A stretch of DNA of 58,514 nucleotides, the filler included, from Sluysia triapertura (taxonomy: Eukaryota): NCBI GenBank assembly GCA_046118255.1. It is 4 parts of 4 records of this genome, joined end to end, with 100 filler letters (N's around TTAATTAATTAA, not from the genome) between each part and the next. Parts side by side here need not be neighbours in the genome. Positions count along the whole stretch, not along the records: positions 45,647 to 58,514 come from JBJNIA010066180.1; 3 more parts are not named here. One strand, given 5' to 3'. Positions within the stretch are counted from its first letter, which is position 1; each line of letters starts with the position of its first letter. The notes under the pieces were generated by a model. The model did no database searches, was not told where the DNA came from, and saw only the letters and a program-made list of their open reading frames with translations. Of the stretch, positions 45,647 through 47,574 are shown in pieces. A program made the position numbers and the translations under genes.

Positions 45647-45706
45647 GTCAGACTATAATAGAAGTACGCACACTTTCCGGCGAAATGGATGTATGGTATA
45701 ACTTGG
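45647..45706 (+). CDS. unc-13: unc-13 C2B exon, variant A (5' part lost at the scaffold edge)
   Basis: (G)[19 protein letters not shown] followed by a phase-1 donor G|gtaggt. Confidence 0.93.
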
Positions 45707-47105
45707 GTAGGTGTAATCACCGTCATATAGACATACATTATAATCATACCAAGCACTAGCACTGCTTGCCCTGCACTATTTTTTTCACTTTTGGTAGCTA
45801 GTTGATTTAGACTTCGTGTATGTGTGTTATTTATTAATGATTATGAACAAGATTTTAGAGATAAATATTCGATTTTGTTGTAACCTTTTTGATAAATGAA
45901 ACAAATGCATATCTTGTTTATAAACATTATAATTCAAATTAGATAAAGATTTATAGTAATCTAAAATATATTTAAAGGTTGACATTTTGTCAGTGTTTTT
46001 ACAGTAATTGTGTACCGTTCCCTGAAAATCGAAAATACATTAATATTTCACTCTATCACTATTTAACTATAACAAAAATATTTACTGACATATCAGACTC
46101 GATTATTTTGTTTAAAAATTTAATATTCTTTAAAAAACAATCGTTAAATTATAAATATATGGTGCGAGATTTCGAAAATTAATTTATTATGTCTTCACAG
46201 TTGACACAGATTTTCCGTTTAAGTAATTTTTTACAATACTTTATAATGACAAGAACATTATCTTCAATCGATAATGATCGACATCGTTGATTTATTTGTA
46301 AATAAAGCAATTATTTTAAAGTATTTTTAAATTATAAATTAATGTTTTAGTTTGCATTTATTTTCCACAAGGTCCATCAAAAAGTTTATTATTATATAAT
46401 ATAAAAAATAATCAATTAATCATTATTCATAAGATTCAATTTTCAGATAATTAATATCAAATTTTATTATCGATAATTTAGAATTTTATTTGTCAAACAG
46501 AATTCTTATTTCAAAATTATGATTATATATGGCATGCTTTTGTTAGCAATATGTACTATCAACATTTTTCTCTCTCTGTTCAGTTACAGAAAAAGAATTA
46601 AATTTAACTCTACATAATTTAAATTATTTTTATTTAGTTTATAAATTGTACAGCCAAGAATATTCATATTTATTTTGATTATACTAGATAAAATCGATTA
46701 AATAATCGAATATGATTAATACAATTTTTTAAATGAAACAGCAGATATATCTTTGTAATAAAACATATTTATAGGTCACCATAAAGTACAAAATATAAAA
46801 TTTGAAATATTTAAATCGGTTTGAAGCGATTACATGACTCATTTGTGTTGTGTAAGTACTAATTTTTAATTTTTAATTTAAAATTTAATTTTTAATTTTA
46901 ATGAATACAGAGAACGGAGACTTTGACGTGATAAAACTAACCTCCACAATGATAAATAAAAATTGTCCATCGTATCATAATATTGAATTAAAAAAAATAA
47001 AACTGTAGAACCAGAAAAAATTTATAAGTTTGTGCAGCTTAATCAAATTATAAAAAAAACCTAAAATGTAATTCGAATAATTATGATTTTTAAAATAAAA
47101 TATTA

Positions 47106-47152
47106 CAATAATAATAATAATAATAATAATAATAATAATAATAATAATAATA
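47106..47152. repeat. (AAT)n microsatellite
   Basis: Directly visible. Confidence 0.95.
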
Positions 47153-47446
47153 ACATTTAAATAATTTTATCTAGCAAAAATTACTTGTCTATGTATATTA
47201 ATAAAATTATGAAGGTCATTTTATATATATTTAAAACAAAACCGATAAAATTATTTTATTATTTATCAAAAAAAACAATTTCATCATTTTCATTCAAAAC
47301 ATTTTTATAATATAATATATTTGAACAGAATAATATATTAAATTTTAACAGCTAAAGTGATATAAAATTCATACATCCATATTAGCAATAAAAGCAACAG
47401 TTGTGTCTGTTTACACACAATTTTGGAGTATATTTTGTTTCTATAG

Positions 47447-47574
47447 GGATGAGGATAATGATTTACGATCGAAATTGCGCTCAAAATTGACATCAGAATC
47501 AGATGATTTCCTTGGTCAAACTGTAATCGAAGTTCGGACTTTGTCCGGTGAAATGGACGTTTGGTATAATTTGG
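47447..47574 (+). CDS. unc-13: unc-13 C2B exon, variant B (128 nt)
   Basis: ctatag|[44 protein letters not shown]|gtaagg. Confidence 0.96.

Follow-up and report, generated by a model that had tools for sequence, protein, structure and literature searches.

The unc-13 gene of Sluysia triapertura contains a tandem duplication of the exon that encodes loop 3 of the C2B domain and, as judged from the genomic sequence, the two copies (exons A and B) probably give rise to two isoforms of the encoded priming factor by mutually exclusive splicing. Munc13/unc-13 is an essential vesicle-priming factor, and it is through its C2B domain that short-term plasticity is coupled to residual calcium and PIP2. 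Both exons lie within one 12.9-kb piece (45647-58514) of the window, which is the whole stretch of 58,514 nucleotides that was analysed. This piece is very AT-rich (19-32% GC in 500-nt steps) and is laid out as follows:

45647-45706, plus strand: exon A, visible 3' 60 nt, encoding the last 20 residues of the loop-3 exon
45707-47446, plus strand: intron between A and B, 1740 nt, about 20-27% GC
47447-47574, plus strand: exon B, complete, 128 nt, with 42 codons and a split codon at each end
47575-53067, plus strand: 5493-nt intron that follows exon B, with transposon relics and a tRNA-like element
53068-53183, plus strand: next exon, common to both routes, 116 nt, acceptor ttttcag and donor GTTAGT
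55609-55683, plus strand: a further unc-13 exon of 75 nt, with both ends in phase 0

The exon pair and its gene

The visible part of exon A opens at the second base of a Gly codon, continues with 19 full codons and one final base, and ends in phase 1 at the donor GTAGGT (45707). Exon B follows a pyrimidine-rich acceptor whose AG ends at 47446, and it is likewise closed by a phase-1 donor, GTAAGG (47575). The first-pass annotation described the 5' half of exon A as lost in a gap; this half is indeed absent, but what cuts it off is the edge of the piece, as position 45647 falls inside exon A directly after N. The internal gap of the piece is located at 58079-58211. The complete exon A presumably has an acceptor and a length of 128 nt.

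The identity of the gene is evident from several matches. All 42 residues of exon B align to the C2B domain of rat Munc13-1 (residues 85-126 of the 6nyc chain, E 1.1e-16), with further structure matches to Munc13-1 C2B in 5ue8 and 7t7c, and the 19 full codons of exon A are identical to the unc-13 protein of Fasciola hepatica. Further along the same strand come two more unc-13 exons in the correct order. The first of these (53068-53183) starts with EKRTDKS once the split codon is completed and encodes the same protein sequence as the exon of the tapeworm Dibothriocephalus latus, and the second (55609-55683) matches, less strongly, the beginning of the linker that leads into the MUN region. Pfam searches with the single exons and with the intron reading frames, pieces too short for this purpose, returned no hits.

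The earlier reading that this exon bears the calcium ligands and the basic loop-3 helix of Munc13 C2B is seen to be correct for exon B, which includes a DEDND motif, a basic helix with an LRSK motif and the strand that follows. The acidic calcium-ligand motif (DEDxD ... DD) is accordingly present in B, and the corresponding half of A lies beyond the piece edge. An amphipathic basic helix is peculiar to the C2B domain of Munc13, and residue R769 on the polybasic face of Munc13-1 presumably corresponds to residue 13 of the exon, as reckoned from construct boundaries. The segment duplicated in Sluysia is the same loop-3 segment that is found in the Munc13-1 C2B structures 6nyc, 6nyt, 5ue8 and 7t7c. 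Munc13 C2B binds calcium and PIP2, and its helix inserts into the membrane (PMC8648301).

Divergence and selection

Exons A and B differ at 12 of the 60 aligned bases (80% nucleotide identity), which amounts to ten synonymous codon differences and a single Ile/Val exchange, so that 19 of 20 residues are the same. When 12 substitutions were placed at random, none of 100,000 placements left one amino-acid change or fewer. Nei-Gojobori counts over 57 nt gave a pS of 0.82 and a pN of 0.045 (pN/pS about 0.05, Fisher p 9e-8); synonymous sites are thus saturated and replacements almost absent. The introns that follow the two donors can be aligned no further than the splice site. A fresh count therefore agrees with the first-pass annotation on the shared phase-1 donor, the 12 differences in 60 and the lone I/V exchange, and alignment bears out its statement that the flanking introns are unrelated. 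Its view of the pair as old and selected also gains from the saturation of synonymous sites next to a nearly unchanged protein, as well as from the pairs found in other invertebrate unc-13 loci. Overall, the substitution pattern supports the retention of both exon copies as coding sequence by purifying selection.

The only protein difference between A and B that is visible in the piece is the Ile/Val exchange, with the 5' half of A lying beyond the piece edge. In other taxa, the copies diverge in the half that comprises the DEDxD motif and the loop helix, and this half is located outside the visible part of A.

Reading frame and proposed exon choice

Translation of the joined exons showed that A followed by the next exon and B followed by the next exon are both open, and that A, B and the next exon together run into a stop 14 codons into exon B. 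A frameshift upon inclusion of both exons, as anticipated by the earlier annotation, is thus found. As the length of the exon is not divisible by three, the frame is kept only with exactly one copy. In relatives, the upstream exon closes on an incomplete Trp codon, to which it contributes the first two bases, and from this it may be inferred that skipping both copies would also break the frame.

It is proposed that the unc-13 pre-mRNA offers two alternative loop-3 exons, of which exactly one would be taken to yield full-length unc-13. Transcripts that include both A and B would meet the stop inside B and be removed by nonsense-mediated decay, and those with neither copy would lose the frame as well. 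The two resulting isoforms would differ in the calcium- and PIP2-binding loop and the membrane-inserting helix, and priming would thereby differ in its calcium and lipid dependence. Mutually exclusive splicing of A and B is well supported by inference from the gene sequence; the use of both copies, a regulated choice between them and a functional difference between the variants are presumed.

The same pair in other invertebrates

The first-pass annotation had called for a survey of other unc-13 loci for the duplicated exon, and such a survey found pairs at the same position in several of them. These pairs lie between a short exon encoding 'ECHN..RVW' and the exon encoding 'EKRTDKS' in the following contigs:

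L006: upstream copy 8074-8199, downstream copy 8941-9066
L007 (a Tara Oceans scaffold): upstream copy 1814-1939, downstream copy 2420-2545
L010: upstream copy 9666-9791, downstream copy 10241-10366
L085 (L091 has the same exon sequences): upstream copy 4543-4668, downstream copy 4844-4972
L088: upstream copy 811-936, downstream copy 1017-1145
L034 (L032 has the same pair): upstream copy 1858-1983, downstream copy 2335-2460
L093: upstream copy 5939-6064, downstream copy 7310-7435

The pairs of L085/L091, L088, L034/L032 and L093 come from a scan of metagenome contigs that added 80 loci. All copies are 128 nt long, except for the 131-nt downstream copies in L085/L091 and L088, and all have the same phases and AG/GT sites, the one exception being the upstream copy of L093, which has no GT donor. 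Other arrangements are also seen among the 80 loci: the exon is fused to the preceding 'ECHN..RVW' exon in 29, of which 26 are fused to the following exon too, and in a further 14 a single copy stands between separate flanking exons. When L006 and L010 are compared, pN/pS is about 0.045 for the upstream as well as for the downstream copies, with saturated synonymous sites in each case, and both copies are therefore maintained by selection in those lineages.

Within a pair, the fourth position of the DEDxD motif is often not the same in the two copies. There is also a regularity at exon residue 12, where the downstream copy carries Ser (LRS[K/T]) in six of the seven readable pairs and the upstream copies carry Gln, His or Lys and never Ser; exon B of Sluysia, which occupies the downstream position, has Ser12 as well. 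In these few and partly related taxa, the regularity hints at one old pair. The exon tree gives no resolution for upstream and downstream copies across taxa, and a single ancient duplication is therefore not claimed; the pairs may instead go back to recurrent duplication. A broader and rather doubtful proposal is that the pair is ancient across protostome phyla, the upstream type having Gln, His or Lys at residue 12 and the downstream type Ser, and that a copy was lost in insects and nematodes (where the exon is fused or single) and in the sampled tapeworms. If true, many invertebrates would switch the calcium- and phosphoinositide-sensing loop of unc-13 between two settings by splicing, for example to suit synapses of differing release probability.

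Several further features were observed in these contigs. The downstream copy of L032 (959-1084) and L034 (2335-2460) is devoid of the acidic ligands and starts with NEHHD rather than DEDxD, yet it keeps an open frame and, in L034, AG/GT sites; this copy may be a calcium-insensitive loop variant. A second tandem exon pair is found in the same unc-13 genes of L006 (3099-3227 and 4004-4111) and L010 (5812-5922 and 6296-6403). Its exon ends in a SKWSAK motif and is located in the linker between C1 and C2B, which suggests a second site of alternative exons in these taxa. At 128-629 of L034, the end of the exon preceding C2B ('VLDGTSKWSAKIAIT') is repeated about eight times with a 50-nt period and may represent a minisatellite or an artefact of metagenome assembly. 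Two protein models from Folsomia candida differ only by a mispredicted intron and were set aside.

Single-copy relatives

When exon B was compared with 1.8 billion representative proteins, 424 hits were obtained, many of which are short genomic reading frames spanning the exon in many animals; the protein databases gave only such genomic reading frames and a few gene models. The closest hits are 95-98% identical to exon B and share the same helix sequence, and those with names belong to the tapeworms D. latus (L003) and Rodentolepis nana (L004). Similarly, the only supported group in the exon-DNA tree unites exon B with tapeworm-type sequences (SH-aLRT 96). This places the organism probably among the flatworms, close to the tapeworms. 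L003, L004 and L005 have exactly one copy downstream of the short 'ECHN..RVW' exon, followed by the next exon in L003 and L005, and the L004 contig ends before the next exon. Single copies are also present in L001, L002 (which has very short introns) and L013, and the contigs of L011 and L012 end too near the exon to reveal an upstream copy. As the nearest relatives are single-copy, the pair is either lineage-specific or has been lost in the sampled tapeworms.

Schistosomes and alternative explanations

The schistosome counterparts of the 'ECHN..RVW' exon and of the loop exon have these positions:

L008 (S. mattheei): short exon 717-758, C2B loop exon 4753-4878
L009 (S. curassoni): short exon 13997-14038, C2B loop exon 17140-17265

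S. curassoni and S. mattheei are closely related species. Their C2B loop exons share 83% nucleotide identity, and each follows a different version of the 'ECHN..RVW' exon; Trichobilharzia regenti has an exon of a 'TSES' type. The Schistosoma versions represent either a duplication of a two-exon cassette or two unc-13 paralogues. By extension, both copies in Sluysia could be functional within a duplicated unit larger than one exon, or a cluster of more than two members, with a choice between cassettes. The occurrence of both the short exon and the loop exon in two divergent versions in Schistosoma would fit this explanation, as would the start of the Sluysia piece inside exon A. It is nonetheless unlikely, given that a search of the whole A-B intron (45707-47446) found no copy of the short upstream exon and that the pairs of L006, L007, L010, L085 and L088 are duplications of a single exon.

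Slightly less likely again is that exon A is an unused relic (a pseudo-exon) and that exon B is the sole functional copy, as in tapeworms. A single copy, of the exon B type, is indeed sufficient for the named tapeworm relatives, and decayed copies occur, as illustrated by the upstream copy of L093, which is divergent in addition to lacking a GT donor; the acceptor of exon A, moreover, lies beyond the piece edge. A relic old enough for saturation should, however, show replacements, stops or indels, whereas exon A retains 19 of 20 residues and an intact donor at a pN/pS of 0.05. Saturated synonymous sites with near-zero replacements thus constitute a strong argument against a decaying relic.

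An assembly artefact at the gap edge, in the form of an alternative haplotype, a mis-joined paralogous unc-13 or a contaminant, is very improbable: exon A does sit at the very start of the piece, adjoining N, and flatworms do seem to have several versions of the exon (those of L008 and L009 are 17% apart in nucleotides and that of Trichobilharzia is a third type), but A and B are joined by one uninterrupted stretch with no N between them, the intron after A has the same low GC content as the rest of the piece, a paralogue should be accompanied by downstream exons of its own, of which there are none between A and B, and real tandem pairs are present in other assemblies. Haplotypes would be near-identical, introns included, and the saturation of synonymous sites, the near-absence of replacements and the unalignable introns exclude a haplotype or assembly duplicate. 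A pair of alternative exons therefore remains the preferred reading.

Intron elements

Two long AAT/ATT-type microsatellites occur in the introns on either side of exon B, and the 12.9-kb piece contains no others:

47107-47151, plus strand: (AAT)15 microsatellite, located some 300 nt before exon B
52226-52279, plus strand: (ATT)18-type microsatellite, complementary to 47107-47151

The two are mutually complementary with exon B between them, and their predicted duplex has an energy of -47 kcal/mol, compared to -15.9 +/- 5.0 for random intron pairs. Pairing of the microsatellites would loop out exon B and so favour exon A. By estimate, the arrangement would arise at random with a chance of roughly 6% and may be fortuitous, and the predicted pairing is therefore regarded only as a lead. 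No conserved intron elements were found between L006 and L010, nor between L085 and L088.

The introns and the region after the shared exon also hold traces of mobile elements. A sequence in the long intron (50140-50201, plus strand) matches the Rfam tRNA family with 34.8 bits, just above the gathering threshold; ARAGORN did not confirm it, and the sequence is likely to be a repeat derived from a tRNA, or else a pseudogene. At 52519-52918, an element some 400 nt long has 53-nt terminal inverted repeats and a remnant reading frame with an 'RSGRP' motif, which we take to be that of mariner-type transposases. The element looks like a miniature transposon in the intron, and a Pfam search with it gave no hit. 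Two short reading frames on the minus strand, 48479-48643 and 55758-56110, look like the tail ends of a LINE reverse transcriptase and of a pogo/Tigger-type transposase; the pieces of them that were searched against Pfam gave no hit.

Comparison with known systems

Splice variants confined to the calcium loop and the membrane-inserting helix would amount to a natural experiment, with paired versions of the same element in one protein. The paired loop versions could be assigned to neuron types and their affinities for calcium and lipid compared and, should the pair be widespread in invertebrates, it would represent a layer of presynaptic tuning that has so far escaped notice. For mammalian, fly or worm Munc13/unc-13, no report describing another version of the C2B loop-3 exon was found, and a full-text literature search likewise turned up no account of C2B exons in unc-13/Munc13 that are alternative or mutually exclusive.

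The unc-13 case is thus new, and mutually exclusive C2-domain exons as a kind are already known. Such exons alter the C2 domains of Syt1, Syt34 and Esyt2 in invertebrates and have arisen repeatedly (Craxton 2010, PMC2823689). Like the unc-13 pair, they are tandem duplicated exons that recode part of the C2 domain of an exocytosis protein; unlike it, they have transcript support, whereas the unc-13 pair concerns a priming factor and is known from genomic sequence. The pair also resembles tandem duplicated exon substitutions in general, in which homologous neighbours of equal length and phase are under purifying selection and only one is used at a time (PMC9741552, PMC8373072, PMC6071210). For the Sluysia pair, where the full length of A extends beyond the piece, no competing RNA structure of the docking and selector type was found, and it would be at least the reading frame that keeps the exons exclusive.
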